Source of the DNA: Ministeria vibrans ATCC 50519
Lineage: Eukaryota > Protista > Filasterea
Assembly (NCBI GenBank): GCA_943704425.1
Contig: CALSCP010002175.1
Location: 62,001-126,000, forward strand
Length of the DNA: 64,000 bases
Direction of reading: 5' to 3'
Below the pieces are notes generated by a model. It did no database searches. It was given only the letters and a program-made list of their open reading frames with translations, and had not been told where the DNA came from. The position numbers were made by a program, and so were the translations under genes. Below, one piece after another: positions 1-25,320 of this stretch (its first letter is position 1; the number at the start of each line of letters is the position of its first letter).

Positions 1-1347
1 CACTCGGGTAGGAGACAAGTGGTTCCGTCGTCGAGCGGGGACTTGGCAGCTCGATGGCAGTAAAATTTTACCCCCAAACATAGTAAACAAATACCTGAAC
101 CCGGAACGCTTGATGTTGGCTGCGTTAGCAGGAGATGTGCCGTGGAACAGCGTGAGAACTTTGCCGGCGTGTCCCTTTGTTTCAACGGTGGGCCTTATGA
201 AACAACAACAAAAGGCGCAGCATCAATAGAAGTCGGAGAAAGGGATGACAAAACTTGTATTGTTACTGTGAACTTGTACTGCTGTCTCGACACGTTTTGC
301 CACAGAAGGCAGAGTACTTGAGCGTCTTTGTGTCAAGGTAGCAGGGACGTGTGCAGCCGCTGCGGGAGCACGGTGGCGCAGGAGCGGCCGAGGCCGAGGT
401 CGCAGCGCTGGAAGTGGCGAGCGGACGCCCAAGGTTGGAGAGAGGGTTGGTAGCTGTCGTTGTGGTCGTCGCTTTGCCAGCTGGCGATGAGGTCGACTGC
501 GAGAAGGCACCTACAAAGCTGTAAAGTCAGAAAAAGATTCATTGCGCCTGATAGATATGTGTGAACCTCGAGATGTGAGGCCACGTTCGCGTGCTTCGGT
601 ACTGTGCTTGACGCCACAACACTCGTGCTGCCGCCCATTGCTGTCGACAAAAGGAGGGCGAGTGCAACCGGGCAGCAGACACTCAGTGGGCTTTGCGTCG
701 CCGCCTGTCGTCTTTCGTTGTCCCTTTCCACCACCACCACCACCACCACCACCACCAGGTGTCGACTTGAAGCACTCCTGGCACCAACCTTTTCCATTGG
801 AAGTCGGGTTTTTGAGACACTACACGTGTAGAAGTAACGGGTGAGAGGGCGGTTGAGAGAAACCCCAAGAACGAACCTTGGTGCAAACTCCTTTCTTTTT
901 AGTCATTGCATGACACGCTGTACACATGTTGGCGTTTGCTTCCATACCGCACTTCTGGTGGCACTGTCGGCAGCTCCAGCCGGCGGGGTCGTCCTTGATC
1001 TTTTCCTTTGGCACATTCGATAGTGGGAAGTACAGCGGCAATAGCTTTTTGTAAGCATCTGATGAGATATCGTCAAACGTGACAAACACAACCCGCTGTA
1101 AAGAGAGAATAAATGAAAGAAAGAACACGTAAGACGGAGAAACAATGCGAGAAAAAATCATTTCTGACAAGTTGAGATCGCTGCAAGAAGAGACGCACAA
1201 CAGACATAGCAATGCGCGCGGCCTTGTCGGTGGGGAAGCCATACACTCCAGTTGAGATGCAGGGGAACGCCTAAGAAACAAACACGCAAGAGATTGAGGA
1301 TCTTCTTTCGTCCATGTACCACAAACACACACACACACACACACACA

Positions 1348-1429
<82 letters not shown>

Positions 1430-3074
1430 CACGTACAATGGATTGCGCATTCTTCTTGACAGCAAGCTCAAGACAGTTGATGTAGCACTTGGCGAGGTTG
1501 TGCGTGGCGTTTGGCTCGTGGCCCTGTGGACCAACCGTGTGAAAGATAGCCTTGAGGTGCTTGAGACGGTAGGGCTTTGTATCACATGCACTGCCGACGG
1601 GACAGCGGTCGCCGTTTGAATTTGTGGACTTTTTTTGACACTCTTTTAGCAGCTGCGGACCGGCGGCTGCGTGGATCTGCGCAAATCACACAAGCACAGA
1701 AAAACCCCCAAAAAAGGGAGAAGAGAGAAGTAGTGATTAGTGATCCAAACAACAGAAATGGTTGCAACTTACAGCGCCATCTACGCCCCCTCCACCTACA
1801 AGACGGGCGTTGGCGGCATTGACAATGATGTCAACGTCAACCTTTGTGATATCCGTCTTGAAGACGGTCACGAAGCCATTGAGGTCTGGACGGAACTGCG
1901 CATATGCAAAAGATGTCTGGTGGTTGGCGGGATTGATGCTGGCATCGCCCCACCAGAGCGGCACGGCAACACAGCCCGACGAAGAAGCCGCTGTTGCTGC
2001 CTTGCTCAACGCCACCGGCTTGCTGTCAGTGGTGCTCGTGGATGATGCGGGTACGCGGCGGCCATGTTCCGACTGATCGCAACCACAGTACTCGCACTCA
2101 GTCGAATTTACCATGGGGTGAAAGGTGGGGCAAGAGCACCCGGGTCTAAAACAAGGGAGTTTGACGGGAGGAGTGTTGCCACGACCGTGGCTTGCTTGGC
2201 TGTGTTGACAAGCGTCACACACGGCCATGCCAGCGCGAGCAGTAAACGTGGGACACGAGCACATTGCCTGACGACAAGGGAGAGAAATATTGTCGGATGA
2301 GGGCGGGAAACGCTTGGTGGACGCAGTGCTTGTGGTGGAAGACGAGACAGTTGACGATACAGCAGGCGAGGCAGCAGCAGTCGAGGTCGCGGTAGTCGGA
2401 GCAGCAGGAGACGGGGTGGCGGTAGTCCCAGCAGAGAGAGAGGAGTTTGGCTGCACGGTGGGCTCCACGGGAGGCGTGGCAGTCGCGCGTAGGCTCGCGC
2501 ACGTCTCTTTCAGATTATTGCGAGCCTCTTTGAGGGAACCTATTTCTTGCTTCTGCTCCTGAATGATCTCATTCAGGCGTTTCACTTCCTCCCGCGTCGC
2601 TCGCAAATCTTGCTGCGACTGCTCCGCCCACTCCCGTGATTGCGCCTGTTGAGCTTGCATCATCTGAAGCATTGTGTTTGTTGCATCGTGCGATACCGCA
2701 GAAGCGGCGGATGGAATTGCTGCTGGTGGTGGTGCTGTTGATGTTGGTGTTGTTGTTGCTGTTGTTGTTGTTGTTGCTGTTGCTGATGTTGGTGTTGTCG
2801 GTGGAGTCTTACGATTCAACTCAAGAGACCCATCCGAGTCCACTGTAGGGAACACCGGCTGCGGCGACTCCGCTGCGTACGGAGGAGGCGGCGTGTCGAC
2901 GGGACAGTGTCGCTGCGACCCCTCCACGCTCTCCACACCCACCCGCGCGTGCTGTGCCGGCTTGCAGCCGCACGTGCAGCATCGGAGCGAGCTTCCGTCG
3001 GCCGGAGCAACATAGTCCTGGCACTGGTTGCACTGGCACGCCCCGAGAAACGCTCCTGTGACATCCTTTCCCAT
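1..3074 (-). CDS. Multi-exon, 3'-partial protein: three Cys/His modules, coiled coil, MacroD-type macrodomain, zinc fingers, start of an ART (PARP-like) domain
   Basis: Spliced translation gives [28 protein letters not shown]|[13 protein letters not shown]...IFHTVGP...[12 protein letters not shown]...SI|[13 protein letters not shown], the MacroD signature (~1170-1860). Fingers CLLPGCTRP...HECCGVKH and [10 protein letters not shown]...FCGKTC follow. [21 protein letters not shown] lies at ~95-165. Introns are GT-AG and the gene runs off the window edge. Confidence 0.85.
1325..1424. repeat. (CA)n microsatellite, intronic
   Basis: Direct inspection. Confidence 0.95.
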
Positions 3075-3619: not shown

Positions 3620-5228
3620 ATGCTTTCAAAGTGCACCAAATGTCGGGAGTGTACTCGGTTCATAGACAGTTCGGGCGGTGGCACATGCGTCTGCGGCTGT
3701 TCTCGACTCTTCCACTTGCCCTTCTTGGGCCGTTGTGTCTTTTCTGACTGTCCCGAGCATACGTTTCTCAGCGGCGATGTGTGGAACGAGTGCGGGTACT
3801 GCGATCACTCTTATGAGATGCACTGTGAGCCTGAACGCCGCGTGGATTTGCAAGGAGTGGTCGACGACGAACTCGATCGTTCGTCCAGCTCCGAACCACA
3901 CTCCGCCGCTGCCGCTGCCGCTGCCGCTGCAGCCGAGGCAGACGTGTCTTTGCATCTTGCGCTGTTCTCGTGCAGCGAGTGCGCGCATGAGCAGTCGCTG
4001 CATTTTGAGCGTCTGTCGACAGTCTGCTCAAAATGCAATCACCATTGCTCCTCTCACCACAGACAAGCGAACGAGCGCCTCCTTCGCTGTGCAGCCTGCT
4101 CTCTGGACGAGGCATCTCACAAGGCGCTCCACGACCCCTCTGATCCGTTTGCGTGTGACTACTGCGGACATGCTCTGGCAGACCACAGCGACGCCCCTGC
4201 CCCTGCACCAGCCCAGGACGACTTCTTCGCGCCAACGTCGCAAGCGTCTGGACTACTGGAGGGCAGCCAGACGCGTTGCTCCAAGCCATCCGGAGCATCC
4301 AGATCGTACGCGTCAGCAGCGGCAACGTCGTCTCAAGACTGCGCCAAGTGCAGGCAGCGAGCAGCGAACCCAGGCCGCCCGTGGTGTCAACAATGCTTCG
4401 CGCAGCAGAGCCAGAAGCCAACCTCGCCCCCTCCAGACCGCTCGCATTCCAGCAGTGTCTCGTCGCACTCTCAGTCAGTCTGCAGTCTTGTTGCTGACGA
4501 CTTCAGGAAGGGCATCAAGAGGAGGGTGGTGGGGGCGCTCGGCTTCGGCTCTGACAGTTGTGTCTTCAGTGAAAAGTGTACCCTCCCGCTTGCAGACGAC
4601 TCCAACGGCAATCGTCTAACGATGTGCAGCAACCACGGTATTTTTATAATACTAATATTACAATGAAAGAACAATGAAACCCCCTAATTCCTTTCCGCTG
4701 TATAATTATAGCGCCGCGCTGCAACTTCTTCGGGTGCGAGAAACTCTGCATTCGGGAGAATTACAAGTACCATGACTTTTGCTCACGCTACCACGCGAAA
4801 AACTTTAAGCCATTCTTCGCGCAAAATTTCCTGAAACAAGACGACATTCCATCGAGCTTCCAGTTTACAGCCGTGTGCAATGTGCTCAGCCGCCGCTTAC
4901 TACGCTCCAAAACGAACGACCTTCACATTGTCTTCTTTGTCCTACACTGTCAGTGTCCGCGCACCGGCATCATCTGTACTGAAGGCATTGGATGTTCGCT
5001 GTGTAACATGGTGCGCACAGGCAAGGTGCCCCGCTCGGCCATACCGACGCCGCTTCACCGCTGCGTTCGCGGCGATTTCCATTTCGGGCGCATTTTGGTG
5101 GTCTGCGAGACGGAATTCTATGTAAGAGTATGGTTTTTTGATAAATTTAGTGATGCTTATGATCTCTCTCTCTCTCTCTCTCTACTCTGTTTTTCTCTCT
5201 CTCTACTTCGTTTCTCTCTCTCTACTTC

Positions 5229-5295
<67 letters not shown>

Positions 5296-5310
5296 CCTAT
5301 CACTTTTTTT

Positions 5311-5390
<80 letters not shown>

Positions 5391-5391
5391 T

Positions 5392-5437
<46 letters not shown>

Positions 5438-5447
5438 NNNNNNNNNN

Positions 5448-5544
<97 letters not shown>

Positions 5545-5759
5545 CTCTCTCTCTCTCTCTACTTTGTTTCTCTCTCTCTCTCTCTACTTTGTTTCTCTCT
5601 CTCTATCTCTCTCTCAAAAATCTCTCTCTCTTTTTCTTCTCTTCTTTCTTTCTTTCTTTTCTTTCTCTTTGTTTTTCTTTCTTGCTCTTGTTTTCTCTCT
5701 TGTGTGGGTAAAAGATGCACCACGACCCGGTTTACAGTGTCATTGGAGTGCTGGGCTGA
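3620..5759 (+). CDS. Cys/His-rich multi-zinc-finger protein with a putative degenerate ART-like C-terminus (paralogue of 14096-15800)
   Basis: Exon 1 MLSKCTKCRECTRF...MCSNH; exon 2 APRCNFFGC...HDFCSRYHA...CPRTGIICTEGIGCSLCNMVRTG...LVVCETEFY; inferred last exon MHHDPVYSVIGVLG* (~5715-5759), which matches the paralogue's VNKDDRYCVIGVLR*. Confidence 0.75.
5163..5620. repeat. (CT)n microsatellite tract, intronic, containing a 10-N gap at 5438-5447
   Basis: Direct inspection. Confidence 0.9.
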
Positions 5760-5909
5760 ATTCAATAAAATATACAACTATTTCTTCCTCCGATTCGATT
5801 CGTCTATTCAACCTTGGATCATTGCTTGTTTGTTTCAGTTTTTCTTTCATTCTGATATACAAATTGATGTCTGTGCGTATGTATGTGTGTGTGGGAGAGA
5901 GGGGGATAC

Positions 5910-7636
5910 TTAAGGAGCAACATAACAGAAGACATAGCGGGGAAGGCAGGCGTCCTCGCGGTACACAACAACCTCATCGTGGTTGAGATTGCCCACCGTG
6001 GCATTTTTGACCTCGCCCAGAACCGAGTCGCATCCGTCGGGCGGTGCAGTCAGTGTCAGTGCGTCTTGTTGTAGTCGCTTGCCGTTTCCCACGACCACTT
6101 TGGCCAGCAGAACCCGTCGCACTTTCTTCCCCGTATCAAGTACCGTCTCCGCCCTATTATATATTATTGGTAATGTAAGATAAACACTTTCCTCTCTCTC
6201 TCTCTATTACGTTTCTCTATTACTTTCACTCTCTATCACTTTGTTCTCTCTCTGTCACGTTGCTGATTCTCTCTCTATCACTTTTTTCTTTCTCCATCAC
6301 TTTGTTCTTTCTCTCTCTGTCACTTTGTTCTTTCTCTCTTTCTTTCTCTCTTTTTCTCTGTCACTTTGTTTCTTTCCCCTCTCCTTTCTCTCTCTCTCGT
6401 ACTCATCACAGTAGTCGTTGGCCTTTCCCGACGTAGACGAGAAGTAAATGCCTCGTCCAAAGCGATCAAACCCGCGTTTGCTGCTCGCTGCTACTTTAAA
6501 GCCCCCTTCGGCAATCCGACACAGTGCACATCCGGCGTGCGCGCACAGATTGGTCGCACTTATGGATGTGCCCTAAACAACACACAACGTAGAAGACTTG
6601 GATTGATTCTATTCTTTGGACTATGGAGGTTGTGTACCATTTGACATTTAGCCGATGTCCCGTGAAACCGTCTTTGTTCATTGCCGGGCGCTCCACGGTT
6701 GTGGGTCGCGGGGTTCTTGGAGATGATCGTTTGCTTGTAGGCATCGTAGCGCGGCTCGAGGGAGCATTGGGAAATGCGAGTGATCTGAACAATCTCAGGT
6801 GCAACGCCCTTGACCCATCTCGTTTGAAACTGCTTGCACAGGGATTGGTACTGGCTGTCGCTTTTGGAGACAACGGATAGCGCTCGTGGAGGAGCTGGGG
6901 CGGGAGTAGGAACAGCGGAAATGTCGGGGCGAGGAAGCTTTTGTCGTCGATTCCACTCGTCCGCATGCGTTTTCCCGCAACACTCGTACGATTCACCACC
7001 GTCCTTTTGAAAACGCGGTTTACGGCAGCCTGCAACTTTGCAAACGATAAAGCCAAGCGCGTTCTTCTCTTGTGTGTCTTCTTGGCGATGCTTTGGCGTG
7101 CAAAAGAGATAGGGGATTTGCGGCGTGCGCATGCGACACGGTCGGCGACACCCTGGATAGGCACAGACGGGCTCTCTCTTCGACTTCCGCGACGACTCGG
7201 GCGGCGGGTCGTGGAATCGCCTGGGAGTGGTGGTCTCACTCTCATCCTCCATGAGCGACCACTCCAGTCCGTCGTGTCCATCCTCCGCCTCTTCGTCCTC
7301 ATCACAGTCCAAGAGACTCAAACGACCAACCCCATCCTCCTCCTCCTCGTCGTCGTCGTCGTCATCGTCGTCATCGTCCAAGTCCACATCCTCCTCGTCG
7401 TCGTCGTCGTCGTCCGAGCCCTCCTCCGCGTCGTCCGAGTCCTCTTCGTCGTCTTCCTCCGCCGCTCCGTCGTCGCAAAGAGAATCCCCGCTCCCTGCAA
7501 ACACCTCGGCAGGGACCACCTCCATGTGCTTCGCTGGCGCATGTGTACACTGGCACCGTACGTTTCCCGGCGCAGTCGTGAACTGCGGACACGCACATTG
7601 GGTGCAATGGCCGCGAACAACTCCTTGGCAGTCCAT
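5910..7636 (-). CDS. ADP-ribosyltransferase (ARTD/PARP-like, H-Y-E) with N-terminal Cys/His module, acidic tract and two CxxxGC..CxxxH fingers
   Basis: MDCQGVVRGHCTQCAC...; GNEQRRFHGTSAKCQM|GTSISATNLCAHAGCALCRIAEGGF...FDRFGRGIYFSSTSGKANDY|...RRVLLAKVVVG...PPDGCDSVLG...LNHDEVVVYREDACLPRYVFCY; three exons. Confidence 0.9.
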
Positions 7637-7857
7637 TGGGAAAAAAATGGAAAAAGAAGGGAAAAAAACGAACACAGAGAGAAGAATAGGGAGCCTCAAG
7701 GCTAGGAGGGAGGGAAGAAAGAGTGGGTGGGGGCGGTGGGGGGTGGAGAGGAGGAAGGAGCACTCTGAACAAGAAAGTTGAGAGGGTGAATTATTATTGT
7801 TAGTGTAAGAAAAATAAACACAGTCGAAGATAATCAACGAATTGATTACTTTTTAAT

Positions 7858-9336
7858 ATGGCGTCCTACGACTCTATGGGGATTCAACGGGGCAAGTGTA
7901 CAAAATGGTAAGAGGACGACGAGAGAGCGAGAGGGATGTAACACTCTCAAAAACGTCTCTCTCTCTCTCTCACTCTCTCTCTCTCTCTCTCCCATTCCGC
8001 AGCTCATGCTCCATCTTCCAACGTGTGCCCGACGGCGTTCGGTGTTCATGCCAGCATACGCCGGTGGCGCATGTCAACGTAAGTGCGATGGTCCTTCTGC
8101 GTCGATGTCAAGACGGAATGTGTTGGGGTGTTTTGACAGGTCGATGAGTGCGAGACAGCCAGCGCAGTCCATGCGCACAGCAGCCATGCAGGTGCCTCGC
8201 CACAAGCCCCGTTCAGGTCGCTCCTGGACGACGGCGACAACGACAACGGCGCCCGCAACAGCGCATACGGCGCAGAGAGACAGTCCTTCTCCCGTTCCGC
8301 TCCCTCACCCAGCTCTCACTCCGCCTCCCACTATTCTCCGCCCGCTGCGCGCAAGGCTCCCCATAATCTATCACCCATACTCTTCTATCGCCGAGGTGAA
8401 CCCTACTTTGAATTCACCAACTTTTATGCGGGAAAGCCAGTGAGACAAGTTGAGTCCTTTGAGCTCTGTGACTGAACTACGTATGACGTTGCTGCTAGAT
8501 TGTGATCGACGGTCTGTCGTGGCCCACCAGCGAGCACTACTTTCAAGCAATGAAGTTTCCTGATACAGCTTTATCGACCCGTGAACACGTCCGGTGAGTA
8601 GATCACACACACACACACACACACAGAATTATACATAATGAGACTGTGTTTTCACAGGAGCGCTCCGACTGTGAGTGAGGCAGTTGCGCGTGCTCGCAAA
8701 CAAGATCCTTCGTTGGTTGTGCGGGGGTGGAGGACTCGCAAGATGGTCGTGATGAAACGGGCTCTCTTCGAAAAGGTTCACATTTCTCTCTCTTGATTGA
8801 CTTTGACAGTATCTCTTGTACAGTTCTGTGATCCGTCACTACGTCAAGTGCTACTGGACACACATGATGATAAGCTTGTTGAGGACTCACCAACGGATGC
8901 GTTTTGGGGCGGGGGAGCAGATGGACGGTAAGTGAGTGAGTGAATCCATGGAATATGTCAGCGTGATAGTGAGCGTTCGTACGAGAGTAAATGCAACAGT
9001 GAATTCGAGTGGTAGTGACTCGCACGATTGCGTTTTATTTTAACTTCTACAGAGGAGAGAATCAAATGGGAAAAATGCTCATGGAAGTGCGGAAAGTGCT
9101 CAGGGAGAGACGAGAAGGGGAGGAAATGGGACGATTGGACAAGATTCTGGCTCAGTATGTGCAGGAAGACCGAGAGAGGGAAGAACAAGAGTACTCTGAA
9201 AAGGTATGTGACGACCTGAGAGGAAACAGTTCTGTTTGTTGTGTATGTGTGTTTATTTTGTTTTTTTTTCTGTTTTGTGTAGAGAAGAGCTCTTGAGAGT
9301 GAGATCAGACGATTAGAACAACACGAAACTGAGTAA
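7858..9336 (+). CDS. NADAR/YbiA-family protein with N-terminal Cys/His module and C-terminal coiled coil (NADAR-1)
   Basis: Spliced: MASYDSMGIQRGKCTKC|SCSIFQRVPDGVRCSCQHTPVAH...PILFYRRGEPYFEFTNFYAGKP|IVIDGLSWPTSEHYFQAMKF...MKRALFEK|FCDPSLRQVLLDT...LVEDSPTDAFWGGGADG|GENQMGKMLMEVR...HETE*. Confidence 0.9.
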
Positions 9337-9462
9337 ACACATTTGAATAATCTCAACAGGATTGCCTTTGTGTCGATCAAATAGAAACAATATGAAGTGA
9401 TAATACTTTTTTTTCGTCAATTTCATTATGGGTGCGCAATACAATTAATTTTATATTGCGCT

Positions 9463-10647
9463 CTACTGCTCGGGAGGCGGTGTAAATTCGTAAGTGACAT
9501 ACTGTATAGGAAGTGCGGCTGACGGACTGTACACAACATATTCATCATAGTTGAGATCCACTCCTGGTTTGCCATACACAGAGTGGAATCCCTAAGCAAA
9601 GACAGAGATAGGATGAATAAAGAAACAGAGCATAGAGAGAAAGGAGTGAAAAAGAAACAAAGCATAAAGAGAGAGAGTGCTTAGACACACGCAGAACTCC
9701 ATCGAATCCTAGTCTCACCTTTGGAGGTCCGTCCAGGTCCACTGCGGTCTTCTGTAGATCATACTGCTTTCCGAGAAGCACCCTTGCAATAAACATCCCT
9801 CTGATGCGCCGGTGCGGCTTGCTTCCCCTGACTTCACTCCTGCACACAATAGTATTATATGCAGAAGTCGCTGATTTCATGGAAGAAGTATACGTTACAC
9901 TTACCCTTCCGAGTAGTCGTGTGCTTTGCTTGAGGTGCGAGTGAAGTAAAGCGCTCGTCCAAACCGATCAAACTTGCCATCAACTCCTTCGCGTACACGC
10001 ATGCCGTGGTGGATGATGCGACACGCAACACACCCGTCATAGCTGCACAGCGCTGGCTCACTTTGCGTGTCGAGACCCAGCGAGCACAGTCGAGTTGTGC
10101 CGTGGAAGCGTCGTTTACTGTTCCCACGTCCCGCATGCTTGCCGTCCGGCTTGACTCCCTCCTCAACCAACGCATCCTGGCACATTTCCCAGCGATCTTG
10201 CACCGCATCGTTGTGAATCCGCAGCACCGACCGCACACGAACGTCTGTGCCGCGCTCCTCCCCGTGCGCCCACTGCCGCTTAAAATACGCCTCCACGTCC
10301 GCCACCGTCTCCTGCGACGCCCACCACACCCCGCACCAGTTGAGCCCCAGCCCGCCCTTCGGCAGGAGCAGTGCGGACGGAATGCTTCCCTGTGCGCCTC
10401 TCTCAAAAATCCGCCCGTGCAACTCCGAGCAAAACTCATGCGTCTTTGTGACGCTCCCGCGGACGAGCTTCACTTTTCGACGGCAGCCCGCCAGTCTGCA
10501 GGGGTCTCGGACGGCGCGACGCAGCGCCTCCAAACGGCACGAATGGGAGCAATGGGCGAAGAGCGATCCGTCTTCCGCCGTCGCTCTCTCGCTCTGACGG
10601 CACACGGGACACACAGAATCCGGGATGCCCGCATGCAAGGTTGACAT
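9463..10647 (-). CDS. ADP-ribosyltransferase (ARTD/PARP-like, H-Y-E), paralogue of 5910-7636
   Basis: GNSKRRFHGTTRLCSLG...LCSYDGCVACRIIHHG...FDRFGRALYFTRTSSKAHDY|...GMFIARVLLG...PPK|GFHSVYGKPGVDLNYDEYVVYSPSAALPIQYVTY...*. The start codon is not certain. Confidence 0.9.
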
Positions 10648-10935
10648 GGCACTTGCTTATGGGTTTCACAGTGTCGAGAGGAGAAGAAAGAACGACAAAA
10701 ACTGAAACTGAAACTGTGTATTGAACTCAATCACATAGAAAATCGCACCGCACAGCAGCACGCCCAAAGCCCGCTTAGTACTTAGACTACTTTGTCTTAT
10801 AGTGCTTTTTATCACTGCAGCCGTTGATCGGATATTCAGAATTGTGTTTGCTTTGCTTTTAATATATTTCCTTTCGCTCAACACTTTCAGTATCTTTTTA
10901 CGCCCTAGTCGACTTCACTCTTTTACTTTTCTCTC

Positions 10936-12704
10936 ATGCACAAGGCCGACGTGCCTTGCGAGCAGTTTTGCCCAGGGAGCCGTGCTGTGACTTGTGAGTG
11001 CGGACATGTAAAATCCAAACACTCTCCGCCAAAGAGAACAGCCAGTCCGAATGCCTCCAAGCCCGCCACACCCACTGGCACGTATGCACAGCCACGCTCA
11101 GGTGCCGCTCCGCACGGCGCAAGGGTGCCCGATCCGTCGCCCACAGCCAAAGCAACGAGTGCGTCGTCTGCGAAAACAAGCCCCTCTCCTCTTGCCGTCA
11201 CGAGCGCCACAGCGACAGAGAACCCTTCTCGTCGAAGCACAGACACGATGCAACCTTCTTGTACGCTTGCCTTGGCTCCGCAGCAAGCAAAGTCGGAAAG
11301 TGTCTCCAGACTGGACGAGCCGACTCGCCATCTATCATCGTCTGCAGCCAAGCCAGAGTCATCGCAGACGACTCTCTCACACGCCCGGAAAGAGCCGCCA
11401 AGCCCATCATCGTCTGCAGCCAAGCCAGAGTCATCGCAGACGACTCTCTCACACGCCCGGAAAGAGCCGCCAAGCCCATCATCGTCTGCAGCCAAGCCAG
11501 AGTCATCGCAGACGACTCTCTCACACGCCCGGAAAGAGCCGCCAAGCCCATCATCGTCTGCAGCCAAGCCAGAGTCATCGCAGACGACTCTCTCACACGC
11601 CCGGAAAGAGCCGCCAAGCCCATCATCGTCTGCAGCCAAGCCAGAGTCATCGCAGACGACTCTCTCACACGCCCGGAAAGAGCCGCCAAGCCCATCATCG
11701 TCTGCAGCCAAGCCAGTGTCATCGCAGACGACTCCTTCACATGCATGGAAAGAGCCGCTAAGCCCTCCGACGTCTTTATATTCTACTCCTGCCCCATCCT
11801 ACCCTCCTTTAAGCGCCGTGCGAAGCCCCTCAGCTTTCTTCCACGGTCCTTCCCACCACAGACACACCGTCCGATTCTACGCCGAGCATTCTGGCCATTT
11901 CCCGCTCTCGAACATGTATCCATCGACCGTAAGTGACAACCGATTGATATGTGTATATTTGCTACCTCCTTTCCCATAATCTCATCGTATCTTTTTTAGT
12001 TGTACATATTTGGGTTGGCGTATGCGAGCGTTCTACACTTCTTCCAGTCGATGAAGTACGAGCACACCTATCAGTATCTCCCCCATCTGTTCCAGACCCT
12101 TCCCTCTGCGCGCGACTCTTTTACACTGTCGCGCACACACGAGCGGCACAAGCGGCCCGACTGGGAAACGGTCAAAATGCAGCTCATGGAAGATGTTCTC
12201 ATGGCAAAAGTACGCTTGCAGTGGTGCACAGCGCCGTTCCATTGACACTGCATTGTTCCTCATAGTTTACGCAGTGCGATCGGCTGAAGCAAACGCTTCT
12301 GGGCACGGGTGAACGGACGTTGGTTGAGAACTCGCCACACGACGCATTTTGGGGAGTGGGAGCACACGGACAGTAAGTCAAAGACGTAGACAAGATAGAG
12401 ACACTCAGTATGTACACATGCAGGGGACGGAATGAGCTGGGAAAGACACTGATGCGAGTGCGGACGCGCATTCGTGCGAGCGAGTACAGACGACAGAGAG
12501 GCGAGCACAGAGTGCAGAAGCTCAAGGAATTGCGCGCACAACTCAAAGCATTGGAAGTGGTCCATCGGGAACGGGTGAGTGAGAGAGTGAGACACAGAAA
12601 GAGACCCAAAAATTATGTCAATCACACTCCGTTTTTTGTTTGAATTTGTTTAGCTGAGGTATATGGACAAAAAGATTCAATATCTGCGCGACACGCGCTA
12701 TTGA
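10936..12704 (+). CDS. NADAR/YbiA-family protein with partial Cys/His module, 24-aa tandem repeats and an altered EHY motif (NADAR-2)
   Basis: PCEQFCPGSRAVTCECGHVKSKH; TVRFYAEHSGHFPLSNMYPST|LYIFGLAYASVLHFFQSMKY...KRPDWETVKMQLMEDVLMAK|FTQCDRLKQTLLGTGERTLVENSPHDAFWGVG|GRNELGKTLMRVR...|LRYMDKKIQYLRDTRY*. The 5' end may extend upstream. Confidence 0.85.
11335..11766 (+). repeat. Coding 72-bp tandem repeat, 5 identical copies plus 1 diverged copy (SSSAAKPESSQTTLSHARKEPPSP)
   Basis: Direct inspection of DNA and translation. Confidence 0.95.
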
Positions 12705-12773
12705 TGAGCGGACATGTCACATACATACACATACAAACACAACAGTGGTCATTACGTAACACAAAAGCGCCTC

Positions 12774-13895
12774 TCATTCAGTGTCCATTGGGCGTCTGCG
12801 CGTCCTTTCGTTCTCAATGTCCTTATTAACCTGAGCCAATCGGCCCTCCGCAGCCCTCAACTAACAGAGACAGAACAGATGACCTCCCACACATACACAC
12901 ACGCAAACACACAGACAGGCTTTCGCTCACCTTTGCTTTGTGCTCCTCACATTCCCTAATCAGTGCCGCACGTTCGCGACACAGCGCCTCTTCACGTTCC
13001 CGTGTCACTTTGGCATCTTCTAGTGAGCTTTCTTCACCTGCAATCCGTGCTCGTGTCACCTCCAGTAGATGCCCAAGTCGGTTCTGGCCCCTACAAAAAG
13101 AATAACAATTGTTATACAATCTCACTATTCAACGATGCTTTCTCATACGTCGAATCGCCACCGTCGCCCCAGTACGAATCGTTGCGTGTGTGTTCCACCA
13201 ACTTGGCATTTCCAGTGCCTAGCAGACGTGCCTTCAAGTTTTCATGTTGCGTAAACTACACGAGAGAGTGTTAGCCAGTCAGGCAGTCAGACAACACTAT
13301 CAAGTTACCTTTGCGTACAGCGCCCGCTCCATCACAGCCTCCTTCACTGCCTCCCAGTCCTTGCGCTTGTAGTCATTTAACTCTCGAGCGCGCGTGAATG
13401 CGTCGCGGGGCGTCACCTGTCGCTCTATCTCGTCGGGAATGTGCATGACCTTTCCTGTGAATTTGTGTGCCTGGAAATAATGCTCGGTCGTCGGCCACCG
13501 GCGGCCGTCAAGGACAATCTACAGCCAGCACACAGAGAAACGTGTTAGCAGCTGGGAGGGAGGCGGACGAGGCGCGCGGGCTTACAGGAGAGTCATGGAA
13601 GTTGGTAAACTCGTAGAATTCTTTGTTTTTGTCGTAGAAATTGATGACGCGCTGAACCTAGAGGATCAAACAAGCGCCAGATGAGGCCAGAAGACGCACT
13701 TGGTCGTGTTCCCACCTCCTGCTTGGCGTGCACTGTGGGCTTGTGTCCGCAGACGCACGTTTGAGATAATTCCGAAGGATCAAACCGATCGCACGACAAA
13801 CTGCGCATTGTGGTGAGACACGCGATGAACACAGCGCCGCTGTTGCCTTACCATGTGTTGCAGTTGTACCGTAGCACCCCTTCAGCGTCCTCCAT
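12774..13895 (-). CDS. NADAR/YbiA-family protein with N-terminal Cys/His module and C-terminal coiled coil (NADAR-3)
   Basis: MEDAEGVLRYNCNTC|LSCDRFDPSELSQTCVCGHKPTVH...INFYDKNKEFYEFTNFHDSP|IVLDGRRWPTTEHYFQAHKF...KRKDWEAVKEAVMERALYAK|FTQHENLKARLLGTGNAKLVEHTRNDSYWGDGGD|GQNRLGHLLEVTR...MDTE*. Confidence 0.92.
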
Positions 13896-14095: not shown

Positions 14096-15800
14096 TTATC
14101 TCAAGACTCCAATGACACAATATCGATCGTCCTTGTTTACCTACAAAAACATTGGTTACTCTCATCCCTTTGTCCATCATTGACTCACCTGTCGCACCAT
14201 CTCACAGACAACCAGAGCAGCACCTCCGCCATAGTCGATAGCATGACACTTTTCGGGATAGGAGTGCGTTGTGCGCTTGGGGAGGATGCCAGTGCGCACC
14301 AGTACGCACAGTGCACATTTTTTTGACTTCGAACAGACACCAGTGTGCGGGCACCGCGTAGCCACATCCAAGTACACCAGCGAAATATTACTAGTACTAC
14401 CACCATTACTGCTGCTACTGTTGCTACTGCTACTGATACTGCGAAGTTCCCGCTGTGCCGCCACATTGCACACCGCAAGGAACGGCAGGTGCACCGGCAA
14501 CGCGTACTCTGTGTGCGTCAGTGGTCGTTGAGTGAAGTACGGCTCAAACTCGGACGCATGCGCCTGTCCGCAGAATTCGTGGTACTTCGTTGCGCTCTCC
14601 ATCGCGCATTTTAGTGTACATCCAATGAAATTGCATCGAGGCGCTGCAGAAAGAAAAGAAGAAAAACACAGAATCAGAAAGCTGTTTTCGTTTTTCGGGA
14701 GTGTTACCATGAGAATGGCACATGGAAAGCTCATTTCCATTCTTGTCGCGTGCGCGTGTATTGCGACAAACGGAAGGGTGGGCGCAGTCTTGACTGAAGA
14801 AGAGACTGGCGGCTTTCTGCAGAAGGCTCTTGTTGCTCCTGACGGACGACGAGTCGCTTCTGCAATGGTGACACAACTGATGATCGGGGCTTGACAGCCG
14901 CACCTGACACTTGCTACATTGTATCTCGCTTGACGATGCTTCTGCTGTGGCTGGGGGTGGAAGCGGGAGCCGCGTGTCTTGGTGTGACCTCTGAGTCAGT
15001 GAGCTGTGGCTACTTGCGTGTGCGCTCTCCGGCCTGGTATGAGAAACTGTATCGTTGACTGACGAGGCAGAGAGGGGCTTATCACAATGATCGGCCAATG
15101 CGTGTCCGCAATAGTCGCAAGCAAAGGGGTCAAAAGGATCACACAGCACCTTGTGTGACCCCTCTTCGATAGAGCAAGCCGCGCACACAAGGGCCCGGCT
15201 GTGGTCTTGCGGCGAGTGCGCCGAGCGTTGGTGATGGCATTTGGCGCAAGCACCAGTCTCAGTTGTTGAGACATGGTCAAGAAAGTGAAGACGCTGCATA
15301 TGCTCACATTCGCTGCAAGAGACAAGCTGTATGCGTCCTGGCACATCTGCTGCGACTCCTTCACGATGGGCGTCTGGTCCTGACACATCCGCTTCGTCCT
15401 CCACCGCCCCTGCAGCAGCTGCGACTCCTTCCCGATTGGCGTCTAGCCCTGACACATCCGCCTGGCCCTCCACCGCCCCTGCAGCAGGCGCGACGCCTTC
15501 CCCGTTGGCTCGTTCCAGCCGCAGTTGCTCTCGAACGCATTGTTCAACCTCCTCGCCGCGTTCCGGTTCACAGTGCGAAATATAGCAGTGGTCGCAGTAC
15601 TCGCACTCGTCCCACAGCGTGGTCGTTTGATAGCGGTGCAGGTGGTCGCACCCTTGCTGGGTGCACTGAGCCAAGTGCGGCAAATGGAAGAGGCGAGAGC
15701 AGCCGCAGAGGCAACTGCGCGCATCCGCATTCCCTCCGGCGCCTCTGAACTCAACGCACGCATTGCTCCCGTACTGGCACTTGGTACAGGCACGGAGCAT
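14096..15800 (-). CDS. Cys/His-rich multi-zinc-finger protein with a putative degenerate ART-like C-terminus (paralogue of 3620-5759)
   Basis: Shares CGCSRLFHLP, ECxYCDHxY..HCEPER, CAACS..E.SHK.L.DP.DPFACDYCGHALADH, APRCNF.GC and LVVCE with 3620-5759, and has the same intron positions. Confidence 0.75.
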
Positions 15801-16182
15801 AGTTAACAAAGAAATTGATTACTGATTCCTCCTCGACAGTCCTAATCTGTCCTATTGAGTATTGACGTTCGAAATGAACAACCTGGATAATAAAAATAAG
15901 ACAATAATAATTATTAATAATATTAAAAATAATAATAATAATAATTATTATAATAATATAATAATAATAATAATAATTGATGTAAACTTCTAACCTTGCT
16001 TGGCTGTCTCGTCGAATCGTCTTTGACTCATCACGATTTCCCCCCGAACTTCTCCAAACAAACTACATTTTCCTTCACTTTGTTTCAGCTCGTGCACCCG
16101 CGGAACATGAACGGAACATCCGCGCTCCATCCGACGCCGCAAGTTCACGTATCACGTATGGGTTTGATCCAGCCATGAGCTA

Positions 16183-16333
16183 NNNNNNNNNNNNNNNNNN
16201 NNNNNNNNNNNNNNNNNNNNNNNNNNNNNNNNNNNNNNNNNNNNNNNNNNNNNNNNNNNNNNNNNNNNNNNNNNNNNNNNNNNNNNNNNNNNNNNNNNNN
16301 NNNNNNNNNNNNNNNNNNNNNNNNNNNNNNNNN
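16183..16333. other. Assembly gap (run of N)
   Basis: Direct inspection. Adjacency across the gap relies on scaffolding. Confidence 1.
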
Positions 16334-16964
16334 NGGGTGCTAGCGTGCGCGTTATCTATCCTTTTTAGGGCTTCGTTCGCTTGTGACAAAAAGCGAAAAA
16401 AAAATTTCAAAAAAATACCGTTTGCACCCGAAATCGCCTTCGCAAGCGGTCTATTGTCTCACCGGAGCTTCACACTGGCTATGTAGCCTTGTGTTTGGCT
16501 ATTTGTGGGTGCTAGTGCTTTCGCGATTGCATGATTTGTCGGCAACCCATTTTACTGCAGTTCTGTACCGAATCTGTGTACCGCTTGGCTTTTCGCCCTC
16601 GGGGCTAAGTAGGTCTGCTACTCCCACAGCCAATTCACGCACATTCAGCTACGTACATGCACCCCACTGTTAACTGTTTCCATATCCTCACCATCCTCAC
16701 CCAAACACCACGCAGTCGCACACAATCCCTCTCCAGTTCACCTCGAGCACGGTGAGTGGGGAATCGCCTTCGAATAGCCTCCATTATCCAACCGCACAAA
16801 CACTCATTTTTTCACGTGCTGTGGTGACGTCTCTGAGCTGCCTTTCTTAGCTTTGTGCTCATCAGCGCTTATCATACGTCTCAATATGATAGGCATTATA
16901 AAGAATTAATAATAATAATAGTATTAATAAAGTGTATTCAAAATACTACTTAGTAGAGTCAGCT

Positions 16965-19293: not shown

Positions 19294-22200
19294 ATGGCGA
19301 TGGTTCCACTTCTGTTTTTCGTCTGTTGCCTGTCCCTTGTCGGGAGCACATCCGCCAGTGCGTGGATGCAGCCGAGGAGCTTGCAGCTTTCCCAGGGCAT
19401 CTGCGGCTCGTCAAGCTTCTTTTTTGACGATCAGATTTGCTTCGCTGGTGGAGGAACGCTTTGGTACAATGACTTTGCTGATTCTCCAGCGGACCATTTC
19501 ATATGGCTTACCAACGCGGTGTTGTGCCTCTCAACTGACAACGAATGGATTGATTACTCCGCGCCTGCGCTGCCATACAAAGCCGCACTGCACGCTACGC
19601 TGGCTTTCACCGCAAACACAGTGTGGGACTACGAATCCGTCCTCCTTGTCGGCGGTCGTGTCGGCTTTGGCCCCTCTAATACTGACAAAGCGTATATTCT
19701 CCAGGACTACGAGTGGACGGAAGTTGATCCGATGCCTCGCGGAGGAAGGGCGGGCCACTCTCTTGTGGGTCCCTTCTCAAACGGTGATGTGTACGTTGTG
19801 TGCGGTGGCGAGCAAGTGATCGAAATCTACAATACCTTGTCAAGCACTTGGCTCGATGGTCCCACCGTGCCCAATACGCAATGTTTGTTTGCTGCTGCAG
19901 CAATGATTGAGTCAAAATTGGTTGTGGTTGGTGGTAGCGAAGAGAGCCCAAAGTCTGCGTGGGTTTGGGACGTTTCGTCGTCACAAGGCTCTAGCTCAGC
20001 TGCCTGGGTGAGGGGTGCTTCGCTACCCTGGCTGTTGTCGTCAGGCGCCTATATGAGCGGTGTTGCCGTTCTCTTCAACACTCGTATGTGCATTGTTGGC
20101 GGCGCTACTTACGCTGTTGGTGCACAAGTCGCTACGTCATCATCGGTCCTCTGCGGCACAGGCTTGCCAGGCTCCTCGTGGGAGTCGCTTCCATTGCTTC
20201 CAGAAGGCGTGCGCTACACAACAGCAGTACTGGCCTATTCGTCGCATGACATTTATCTTGCTTCCATTGGAGGCGTCGTGACAGAGCAGAACAATGCACT
20301 CTCAAGTGTGAATATTCTAGATGTGGATCAAATCCTGACATCGACATCGCTGTATTGTACTCTACCGTGTCAAAACGGAGGCTACTGTGCGCCAATGGAT
20401 CCAGGATTGGGTCCAGCCTCCTTGCCGGATTTGGTGTGGGAAAACCAGTGCAAGTGTCCCTTTTCCTACACGGGAGCTCAGTGCGAGACCTTTGTCTCTC
20501 TCCCGCCTTGCGACCCCAGCACGTCTGCCGAGTGTGCAAATGGTGGATCGTGTGTGCTGACAAGCCCGACTACCTTTGAATGCATTTGTCCCGCGACGTA
20601 CACCGGCTACACCTGCGAATCATTGACCTCCAATGTCGACCCATGTGCTCTGAGTCCGTGCCGCAATGGCGGGTCATGCCTGAACGTGGCACATCTCTTC
20701 TTTTCTTGCCTGTGCCCGGTGGGGTTCGTCGGGGGGGAGTGTGAGACGTCCTTGAGCGCCCCTCCCCTTTCGATGGCCATCTGCGATTCGTCGCCCTGTT
20801 TGAATGGGGGAACGTGCACCGTGGCCGAGGTCAACAGCACCATGGAAGAATGGAGATGCGAGTGCGACGCGGTCACGAGCGGATTCACCGGTAGTCGGTG
20901 TCAGCTCACGGTTGCAAGCGAATTGTGTGAATCAAGCCCATGCGCCAATGGAGGAACATGTGTGGGCGTTGATGCTACAGAAAAAACTCGACGGACGTCT
21001 TCCGTGGATCCCGAGTGGATGTGCGTGTGCCTGAGCGGCTTCACCGGCGATCGTTGTTTGGTGCAAAATGGATCCTGCTCGGCCACCGCCATTTCCTTGG
21101 GCGAAAAGTACTGTCGCAATGGTGGGTATTGTCAGGTGGCGCCAAATGGACACGTGGCGTGTGCGTGTCCCCAGGAGTTTAGCGGTGCGTATTGTGAGGT
21201 GCCGATCAATGCCACTCGGTGTGTCACCTCGCCCTGTCTCAATTCAGGACTGTGTCTGGCATTTAAGAATGGACGTCACTTTTGTGAGTGCTATCCTGGC
21301 TATACCGGTACCACTTGCGAAACGCTCACAATATCGAGCTGCTTGTCGTCTCCTTGTCTCAATGGCGGCCTGTGCATTTCGTCACTGACTGCGTCGCTCG
21401 ATGGGACTCCCGAATGGGCGTGTCGATGCCCAACGGGCTTTGTGGGAATCGACTGCTCCACCGTTCTGCTGCCCAGCGCATGTGATGCTCGTCCCTGTGA
21501 AAACGGGGGTATTTGCTCGGTGCAACAGCTCAACCAGTTTGTGTGCAGGTGTGGCATCGGTTTTACAGGCGATAAGTGCCAGGTAAAACTGCCGACTTGT
21601 GCGTCATTGCCTTGCTTCAATGGAGGCACTTGCTTTTACAATGAACATGGTACGACCATGGTTTGCGCGTGCAGTGCACATTATACCGGAACCAGGTGCG
21701 AAACAGCTGACGAGGCAGCAACGCCCGAGTCGTTGGGTGCGTCGGGCCCGAATCATAGTACATTCATTGTGATTGCCGTCTTGGTACTCTTGGCAACTCT
21801 CGCTCTTGTATTGGCGCTCACCTTTTACGTGTGGCGGCGGAGACGATCTAATCGGCAGGCGGCGCTACCCGATCATCACAGTGACCTACGCGAGTACCTT
21901 ATTGTTGATCATGGACAGGCAACGGGCGAATGTGATGACGACGCAACGTACACGATGGAGATGGAGGATTCAGGATCAATGGCGAGCCGGGTGCCCTCAT
22001 CTTGGAAGAAATTACCCGCGGACGCATGTATGTCTAGTGGCTTTGATCAGGTGGATGTGACCGCGACGTTGGGTCGGTGCTTTGAAGAGCTTATGAATGG
22101 GACGGCTCGACCGCAGTCGCATGGCAGAGGACGCGACAGCCATGGCTTCAGCTTCCAACGGTTTGCCATTCAAAGGGTGTTTCACATTCAAAATTATTAT

Positions 22201-22591
22201 CTCTGGGCGGACTACGATCGCGAGCGCGGACGCATTCGTGCTAAACTCCCGCGCGCCGTCGACAGGTCGTTCCTCGCCTCTCCCATTTTAACTTCAAACT
22301 TTAAAATTCCTGGCTCACCTCTCTCCGCAGACATTGGCGAGTACTTTTTCTTTCATGGAACAAAGGTAAAGTGCCCTTTGGTAAACTTGTTATTAACACT
22401 ATTATGTTTAATAGTCGTCTCTTGCCCATACGATCAAAGCGACTGGATTTGATGATCGGGTGGCGAGCCAAAAGGGAATGTTTGGTGCTGGATGCTACTT
22501 TGCCGAATCGTACGTCTTCAATTATGATATTAATATAAGAAAAGAGTGTACAATGTCAAAACAAGATAGTATACAAAACAAACAGCGATAC

Positions 22592-25010: not shown

Positions 25011-25278
25011 ATGTCCAGCGCATTGGACGAGCAGCTGGCGACAGGCATCCGCGATGCGCTGAGCCGCTTAGGGTTGAAATTGATCATCGTGGCGCGCATC
25101 AAAAAGTCCGTCCTCGAACTGCTCACTGCCCTCAGCGAGCCTGCCTGCCACGCCGCCGTGGCGACAGCCTTTGTTGCCGAATGCAAGATGCTCACAGCGG
25201 GCACTCAGGACGCGTTTTTGAGCCTGATGCGCCGAGTCATTGACAACACCAAAGGCACCTCCTCAACAACAACAACAT

Positions 25279-25320
<42 letters not shown>

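Follow-up and report, generated by a model that had tools for sequence, protein, structure and literature searches.

The NADAR domain was reportedly named by de Souza and Aravind in 2012 from contextual links. Pairs of NADARs with ADP-ribosyltransferases (ARTs) are known in bacteria; in the papers covered here, eukaryotic NADARs are described as stand-alone or orphan proteins. An earlier mention of such pairs in eukaryotes is possible, most likely by the same two authors in 2012 or by Aravind et al. (2015). In the anti-phage system DarT1-NADAR (DarTG1), the genes of the writer, an ART, and of the eraser, a NADAR, are neighbours and the underlying chemistry is the reversible ADP-ribosylation of guanine (PMC11543638). 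YbiA-family NADARs hydrolyse guanine-ADP-ribose as well, and in myxobacteria a NADAR of this family acts as antitoxin against YarT, an ART toxin of the H-Y-[E/D/Q] clade (PMC11125620). Cytidine-ADP-ribose is removed by YbiA-type and by sponge NADARs, and a sponge NADAR removes both G- and C-ADP-ribose; endogenous ADP-ribosylation of G and C in eukaryotes "has not yet been discovered", and eukaryotic NADARs are read as protection against bacterial toxins (PMC12945103). According to a 2026 review, NADARs have not been identified in fungi (PMC13720257). Here we analyse a 64,000-nt window of the genome of Ministeria vibrans ATCC 50519 (GCA_943704425.1, contig CALSCP010002175.1, positions 62,001-126,000 of the forward strand), which harbours two ART genes (ART-A and ART-B) and three NADAR genes (NADAR-1 to NADAR-3). 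Each of the two head-to-head ART/NADAR pairs in this window probably constitutes a writer-eraser module in which the two genes are co-regulated and ADP-ribosylation is reversible.

The host genome is eukaryotic and intron-rich and comprises 29.7 Mb. Five gene models were rebuilt from six-frame translations (Table 1); every intron is of the GT-AG type and each model yields a single open frame. Searches were carried out exon by exon, and exons were joined from their coordinates only for local alignments and for the tree. The rebuilt models agree in full with a preliminary description of this locus, both in the coordinates of the ART and NADAR genes and in their layout: ART-A diverges from NADAR-1 and ART-B from NADAR-2, while NADAR-3 converges on NADAR-2 with 69 bp between their stop codons. 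ART-A and ART-B are the sole two genes of their ART type in the genome, and three of the five NADAR loci present in the 29.7 Mb lie within 6 kb at this site. This clustering of ART and NADAR genes is clearly beyond chance. Comparison of the two divergent spacers revealed nothing in common beyond purine-rich 8-9-mers, and a scan for sigma-70 promoters and terminators, a type of scan irrelevant to eukaryotic DNA, returned nothing.

Transcription of the pairs was assessed with public RNA runs X1, X4 and X5 from two studies, which provided spliced contigs (these are run labels, distinct from the genes X1 and X2 introduced below); run X8 turned out to be unspliced DNA. The comparison spanned one 6-kb stretch, with NADAR-3 outside it. 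Nine modelled introns were matched to the base by RNA contigs, namely both introns of ART-A (6154-6402 and 6573-6637), both introns of ART-B and five of the seven introns of NADAR-1, whose remaining two fall at simple repeats passed over by the tool. Poly(A) ends were observed at 9358 for NADAR-1 and at 9393 for ART-B, and the ART-A contigs extend to about 7737-7756, that is into the 221-bp spacer shared with NADAR-1. RNA cover was absent across 10700-10899 within the second spacer, which is flanked by transcript ends or starts at about 10666 and about 10903. This lack of RNA indicates that the spacer between ART-B and NADAR-2 is truly intergenic and that the gap contains no hidden upstream exon of NADAR-2. 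Transcripts of ART-A, NADAR-1, ART-B and NADAR-2, including exon 1 of the latter, occur in the same RNA samples. Co-expression, which had been proposed as a check on the pairing, is borne out to the extent that all four genes appear in the same runs, contig depth being an indicator of presence only.

Both ARTs carry the motifs FHGT, [I/L]YF and LNxDE, as had been noted before. ART-A consists of an N-terminal Cys/His module, an acidic linker, two TRASH-like Zn modules and a PARP catalytic domain with a Cys4 insert, whereas ART-B starts with the TRASH-like modules, followed by the PARP catalytic domain with its Cys4 insert, and is devoid of the N-terminal module. The H-Y-E triad is formed by H325, Y376 and E450 in ART-A and by H182, Y234 and E305 in ART-B. 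A direct match to the PARP family PF00644, as anticipated in the preliminary description, is missed at the level of exons, which score 22.9 bits (ART-B exon 1) and 15.3 bits (ART-A exon 3) against a cut-off of 26.7, and the family placement comes instead from the relatives and from a profile match to tankyrases. A word-based homologue search and a single-sequence search of the PDB with ART-B exon 1 were empty; a full HMMER scan with this exon retrieved 338 relatives, and all ten relatives that were scanned passed PF00644. In an alignment of 20 family members, the His, Tyr and Glu of the triad as well as four Cys residues following the FHGT strand are invariant, and all of these are kept in ART-A and ART-B. 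When the family profile was compared with solved structures, the catalytic domains of tankyrase-1/2 were nearest (E=1e-20), and the same two enzymes were the nearest fold match of an AlphaFold2 model of the family member P0002 (TM (template modelling) score of 0.76-0.83 to target; mean predicted local distance difference test score 77, above 90 in the catalytic part).

Apart from this best profile and fold match, the window ARTs share the H-Y-E triad and motifs of the types SSKS-x-x-Y and Y-x-E-x-V-I-Y with tankyrases. However, their Cys4 insert is located right after the FHGT strand, whereas the Zn site of tankyrases follows the YF strand, and in the N-terminal part, where tankyrases have ankyrin and SAM domains, they carry Cys/His and TRASH-like modules; Pfam revealed neither ankyrin nor SAM domains in the ARTs or in the scanned relatives. 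The lack of these domains and the different placement of the insert argue for a tankyrase-like core rather than for tankyrases proper. An identity of the ARTs with DarT was ruled out, as their only similarity is to PARPs and tankyrases and no PADLOC model matched.

The fungal relatives that were looked up belong to Basidiomycota (Fomitopsis, Thelephora, Amanita, Schizophyllum, Dentipellis, Mycena and others), Glomeromycota and chytrids, the other ones to Amoebozoa (Balamuthia, Stereomyxa), stramenopiles (Chrysophaeum, Ectocarpus), the malawimonad Gefionella and further protists. In a quick maximum-likelihood tree, the fungal ARTs form one supported clade (99% in the Shimodaira-Hasegawa-like approximate likelihood ratio test, SH-aLRT), with ART-A and ART-B placed outside of it, among protist sequences in weakly supported groupings. 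The two window ARTs are 29% identical; ART-B is fast-evolving, its branch being the longest of the tree. For a prokaryotic origin of the family there is no evidence, as a search by sequence pattern across 185,579 genomes of bacteria and archaea yielded a single bin. This bin, a metagenome-assembled genome of 20.3 Mb labelled 'Stappiaceae' with three ART loci from this search on one contig (OZ220037.1), is too large for a bacterium and probably represents eukaryotic DNA. In total, the 'Stappiaceae bacterium' bin has four to five copies of the ART, located on one contig of 211 kb, and is devoid of NADARs.

All three NADAR genes exceed the PF08719 cut-off (35.1 bits) in a six-frame search of the genome, with 64.2, 52.1 and 42.7 bits, and the domain assignment made earlier is upheld. 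NADAR-1 is composed of the N-terminal Cys/His module, a YbiA-type NADAR domain and a coiled-coil tail; NADAR-3 combines the N-terminal module with a complete YbiA-type NADAR domain. With the P. nicotianae NADAR as active-site reference (E43, K50, E125, D130 and W133; PMC11543638), the set of catalytic residues is complete in NADAR-1 (E154, K159, E233, D238, W241) and in NADAR-3 (E79, K84, E158, D163, W166), and NADAR-2 fails at the position of E43. The Glu that defines the YbiA type, at the position of E125 in the reference, is present within LVE in all three proteins (E233 in NADAR-1, E422 in NADAR-2 and E158 in NADAR-3). Exon 4 of NADAR-3 scores 48.1 bits with PF08719 and its only PDB match is E. 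coli YbiA (2b3w, E=1e-12). The domain of NADAR-2 is divergent, with a degenerate first motif and Leu343 in place of the first catalytic Glu, E422, D427 and W430 being kept, and its exon-level score is 20.9 bits as compared to the 48.1 bits of the equivalent NADAR-3 exon. The first exon of NADAR-2 additionally contains a transcribed in-frame tandem repeat that by the likeness of its copies is evidently a very recent expansion. The missing Glu, the low profile score and the young repeat suggest that NADAR-2 may be impaired or may have taken on another role; immediately downstream follows NADAR-3, which is intact.

The window NADARs are 34-36% identical to each other. A close relative from Geodia has E. 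coli YbiA as its best match (~50% identity, E=2e-34), whereas the P. nicotianae NADAR is distant from it. By sequence, the window NADARs fall into the same subfamily as E. coli YbiA and the plant NADARs fused to RibA/RibD (TIGR02464), but they differ from them by their fusion to Zn modules of the ART type and by their linkage to ART genes. A fourth YbiA-type NADAR copy of the genome is solitary and located beside an assembly gap (C1708). PADLOC runs on the NADAR relatives returned nothing but the candidate model PDC-M42C. YbiA-type NADARs have undergone a large expansion in sponges (Geodia, Halichondria, Ephydatia and many ENA assemblies), often with several copies per contig.

Writers and erasers of this locus have an N-terminal module in common. 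This module of ~35 residues (G-x-x-R-G-x-C-x2-C-x-C-x2-[FY]-x7-12-C-x-C-x-[HC]-x4-H) starts ART-A, NADAR-1 and NADAR-3, and NADAR-2 has retained only its second half. The copies of ART-A and NADAR-1 are 43-46% identical. Head-to-head partners do not exceed non-partners in the likeness of their modules (identity of about 40% in all comparisons), which gives no sign of partner-specific co-evolution. The same module starts the ARTs of an MMETSP protist, of Gefionella and of the Logan contig L003, the latter likewise from a protist (ARTs P0002, P0006 and P0012), and it makes up exon 1 of the NADAR encoded on L003. The TRASH-like module (C-x3-GC...[DE][FY]C[GS]-x2-H) is common to the ART family and to NADARs of Geodia. 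Pfam holds no family for either module, the N-terminal one giving only sub-threshold FAM221 matches, and the ESM Atlas offered no usable lead on them; in AlphaFold2 models the TRASH-like module is predicted with high and the N-terminal module with low confidence. We consider the N-terminal module a candidate for a new adaptor domain of ADP-ribosylation systems.

To learn how far the pairing extends, ART loci in other genomes were selected by taxon and contig size, blind to the neighbouring genes; the sponge Geodia was reached from the NADAR side. Fomitopsis schrenkii possesses three ART/NADAR pairs within 23 kb, all of them divergent, and Dentipellis one divergent pair with a 469-bp spacer. 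In Amanita polypyramis, one divergent pair (347 bp) is accompanied by a further NADAR at 3 kb from a second ART. A search for divergent pairs in fungal and protist genomes had been proposed as a check on the arrangement, and these three fungi provide such pairs. On the protist contig L003, the NADAR follows the ART on the same strand. In Geodia barretti, an unannotated ART of the window family (CASHTH010002431.1; L007:8611-9461) is situated between two genes annotated as 'N-glycosidase YbiA'; its TRASH-like module, LFHGT, Cys4 insert and SSKSYDY are recognizable in pieces lying in different frames, which may reflect either introns or decay. Schizophyllum and Chrysophaeum have a NADAR at 6-8 kb from the ART; the NADAR of Chrysophaeum is of the classical short type.

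In total, ART and NADAR are immediately adjacent at five of the 11 other loci, and at two more a NADAR is found within 10 kb. Seven of eight pairs are divergent, the two of the window included; this count comprises pairs in which both genes were called and are adjacent or nearly so (one with a 99-aa open reading frame (ORF) in between, one with a 2.3-kb gap), leaving the unannotated Geodia ART uncounted. As NADAR genes number a handful per genome, adjacency at 5 of 11 loci is far beyond expectation, with a rough chance per locus of ~1e-3, in a small sample without phylogenetic correction in which the three Agaricomycetes may represent one ancestral event. The NADAR neighbours in fungi lack Zn modules, and the linkage can for this reason not simply be attributed to local duplication of module-bearing genes. 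Such conserved adjacency reads as a comparative-genomic signature of functional coupling.

Mechanistically, a PARP-family ART with a tankyrase-like core would attach ADP-ribose from NAD+ to a target, and the YbiA-type NADAR encoded next to it would hydrolyse the N-glycosidic ADP-ribose linkage generated by its neighbour, thereby holding the product of the writer in check. A shared promoter region of 220-290 bp, firing in opposite directions, would ensure that the eraser is made whenever the writer is, and the N-terminal Cys/His module may bring writers and erasers to one substrate or assembly hub. Most likely, the target would be a nucleic-acid base carrying an N-glycosidic ADP-ribose mark, because NADARs are known to act on ADP-ribose at guanine-N2 and at cytidine, in DNA and RNA. 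A conserved ART partner that is transcribed in the same samples represents a concrete candidate for the writer that orphan eukaryotic NADARs lack.

Several observations weigh against a writer-eraser module of this kind. Contig depth can neither rank expression nor show quantitative co-regulation. The linkage is not universal, as tblastn revealed no NADAR near the ART loci of Balamuthia, Thelephora, Gigaspora and Globomyces, and part of the clustering in the window could stem from local duplication of a module-bearing gene family. The direct partner of ART-B, NADAR-2, is without the first catalytic Glu. Close relatives of the window NADARs pass the cut-off of TIGR02464 ('riboflavin biosynthesis intermediates N-glycosidase'), a function under which the window NADARs would be filed by sequence alone. 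Finally, a nucleobase target is in tension with a tankyrase-like, protein-modifying core: tankyrases modify proteins, and removal of protein-linked ADP-ribose is not known for NADARs. Moreover, the guanine-N1 mark set by human PARP15 is not removed by a bacterial NADAR (bioRxiv 10.64898/2026.03.31.715305).

Compared with the bacterial systems, a writer-eraser module at this locus would resemble YarT-YbiA in that an ART of the H-Y-[E/D/Q] clade is encoded beside a Glu-type NADAR of the YbiA family. However, YarT and YbiA are encoded in a bacterial operon and the ART is small, with a single domain, whereas the window genes are eukaryotic, intron-bearing and divergent, and their ARTs have a tankyrase-like PARP core, the Cys4 insert and Zn modules. 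As for DarT1-NADAR, likewise a writer and an eraser side by side, the window ARTs are not DarT, and the window NADARs are YbiA-type, whereas those linked to DarT1 are of the BC4488/Asp type. The toxin-antitoxin-like module suggested in the preliminary description is supported in part, namely with respect to expressed head-to-head pairs, a pairing that is conserved in Agaricomycetes, a sponge and a protist contig. Macro-PARPs (PARP9/14/15-like) also couple a writer to an ADP-ribose-processing domain, and one such gene is present in the surrounding island; in the window pairs, however, a NADAR takes the part of the eraser and is encoded by a gene of its own, divergent from that of the writer. 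A tentative synthesis is that the tankyrase-like Zn-insert PARP might be the missing cognate writer of eukaryotic YbiA-type NADARs, that the common Cys/His adaptor might recruit both, and that together they might serve in innate immunity or as toxin and antidote, and thereby form a eukaryotic equivalent of DarT1-NADAR and YarT-YbiA. If true, the toxin-antitoxin logic of bacterial ART-NADAR pairs would extend to eukaryotes.

The latter element of this synthesis, a harmful ART with the NADAR as its antidote, operating in defence of the abortive-infection kind or forming a selfish killer-antidote element akin to the toxin-antidote drivers of fungi, can also be considered in its own right, and we regard it as rather doubtful. 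Both bacterial analogues, DarT1-NADAR and YarT-YbiA, are toxin-antitoxin systems, and the family has a patchy distribution, lineage-specific expansions (including that of the YbiA-type NADARs in sponges) and fast divergence, as seen in the low identities among ARTs (29%) and NADARs (34-36%) and in the long branch of ART-B. The genomic surroundings point in the same direction: the pairs are flanked by two degenerate paralogues, genes X1 and X2, and helicase-PARP ORFs, an EGF/Kelch-PARP ORF and a macrodomain-ART gene are located nearby (Table 1). Gene X1 encodes a degenerate ART-like segment without the catalytic His; gene X2 combines several N-terminal-type modules and one TRASH-like module with a degenerate ART-like segment in which this His is missing as well, and the N-terminal-type modules of the two genes are 58% identical. 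Both are candidate pseudo-enzymes flanking the ART/NADAR core. The island context fits, without proving, a role in conflict or immunity. However, transcription of the four genes together in ordinary RNA samples would be explained equally well by housekeeping regulation, the tree with its supported fungal clade (99% SH-aLRT) and the window ARTs outside of it agrees with vertical descent rather than with a mobile selfish element, and the ARTs are not matched by any defence model of PADLOC. By its sequence, the ART may be either a toxin kept in check, following the logic of DarT1-NADAR or YarT-YbiA, or a regulatory enzyme.

Less likely still, the NADARs could be metabolic N-glycosidases acting on riboflavin intermediates or NAD metabolites, with their linkage to ARTs being incidental and due to local duplication. 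This would account for the TIGR02464 matches and the ~50% identity to E. coli YbiA of close relatives, and in-situ duplication has clearly happened here, as eight or nine consecutive genes of an island reaching from about window position -3100 to 15809 begin with the N-terminal module. The preliminary description had cautioned in this sense, and rightly so as regards the YbiA subfamily (2b3w, TIGR02464), but a riboflavin-only view of that subfamily is out of date, since YbiA-type enzymes do hydrolyse base-linked ADP-ribose (PMC11125620). Furthermore, adjacency recurs in Agaricomycetes, where the NADARs are without Zn modules, in a sponge and in another protist, and targeting modules shared with ARTs would make little sense for an enzyme of soluble metabolites. 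The genome also already has a RibA-fused NADAR: apart from the cluster, a NADAR joined to the C-terminal portion of GTP cyclohydrolase II (RibA) is encoded at a contig end (C334:36600-37436), a classical riboflavin arrangement that can cover this role.

Auto-modification is common among PARP-family enzymes. That the NADAR acts on the auto-modified ART or on a soluble ADP-ribose-derived product of it, instead of on a third-party macromolecule, would agree with comparative analyses proposing low-molecular-weight ADP-ribose derivatives as substrates of NADARs (PMC9503650), but is improbable in view of the NADAR activities characterised in the papers covered here, which concern base-linked ADP-ribose and riboflavin intermediates, and of the common Zn modules, which suggest co-recruitment to a macromolecular target.

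Table 1. Features of the ART/NADAR cluster and of the surrounding island; positions refer to the 64,000-nt window unless a contig is named.
Feature	Position	Strand	Description
ART-A coding sequence	7636-6638, 6572-6403, 6153-5910	minus	3 exons, 470 aa
ART-A N-terminal Cys/His module	7526-7606	minus	CxxCxCxxF-x9-CxCxH-x4-H
ART-A two TRASH-like Zn modules	6965-7165	minus	C-x3-GC...[FY/E]C-x-x-x-H
ART-A/NADAR-1 divergent spacer	7637-7857		221 bp, GC 0.42; putative bidirectional promoter
NADAR-1 coding sequence, exons 1-4	7858-7907, 8003-8078, 8140-8439, 8499-8593	plus	8 exons in total, 315 aa
NADAR-1 coding sequence, exons 5-8	8658-8775, 8824-8927, 9053-9203, 9283-9336	plus	
ART-B coding sequence	10647-9905, 9839-9719, 9591-9463	minus	3 exons, 330 aa
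ART-B/NADAR-2 divergent spacer	10648-10935		288 bp
NADAR-2 coding sequence	10936-11928, 12000-12209, 12266-12372, 12424-12574, 12654-12704	plus	5 exons, 503 aa
NADAR-2 exon 1 in-frame tandem repeat	11334-11765	plus	72 nt x 6.0 (6 x 24 aa), copies 98% identical, transcribed
NADAR-3 coding sequence, exons 1-4	13895-13852, 13800-13716, 13657-13586, 13518-13309	minus	7 exons in total, 254 aa
NADAR-3 coding sequence, exons 5-7	13255-13149, 13090-12931, 12860-12774	minus	
PARP gene upstream of the window	L017:4897-7293 (C2175:58897-61293)	plus	N-terminal module, ~six TRASH-like modules
Putative macrodomain-ART fusion	1-3074, continuing past the window start (L017:7546-7905)	minus	macrodomain PF01661, E=4.9e-17
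Gene X1	3620-5150 (3' end approximate)	plus	several N-terminal-type modules, TRASH-like module at 4720-4794
Gene X2	14177-15809	minus	X1 paralogue in mirror orientation; YLDV replaces FHGT
Receptor-like ORF	19294-22452	plus	1052 aa, Kelch and many EGF repeats, ends at FFFHGT PARP motif (22351)
Superfamily 1 (SF1) helicase ORFs	25011-30881	plus	AAA_11/AAA_12 matches; the next ORF encodes a strongly matching PARP domain (E=1.6e-17)
PARP gene, PARP1-3-like	39847-40782	minus	four PF00644-matching segments, LLWHGSR motif

Among the further genes of the island, the PARP gene upstream of the window has a canonical PARP domain without the Cys4 insert. Its architecture equals that of the first gene on L003 (L003:69-2348), and part of the island may for this reason be syntenic between the two organisms. 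The putative macrodomain-ART gene encodes three N-terminal-type modules, a coiled coil, the macrodomain, RanBP2-like Zn fingers, two TRASH-like modules and an ART (FHGT at 136-147). The helicase ORFs show a weak match to the ZNFX1 domain (19.7 bits, below cut-off) and possibly form, together with the PARP ORF, one sensor-effector gene. Long repeats of the CT/GA dinucleotide type occur at window positions 4900-5900 and 7940-8000, and short runs of N at 5438-5447, 16183-16334 and 51948-51957; both RNA and DNA contigs break at the repeats.

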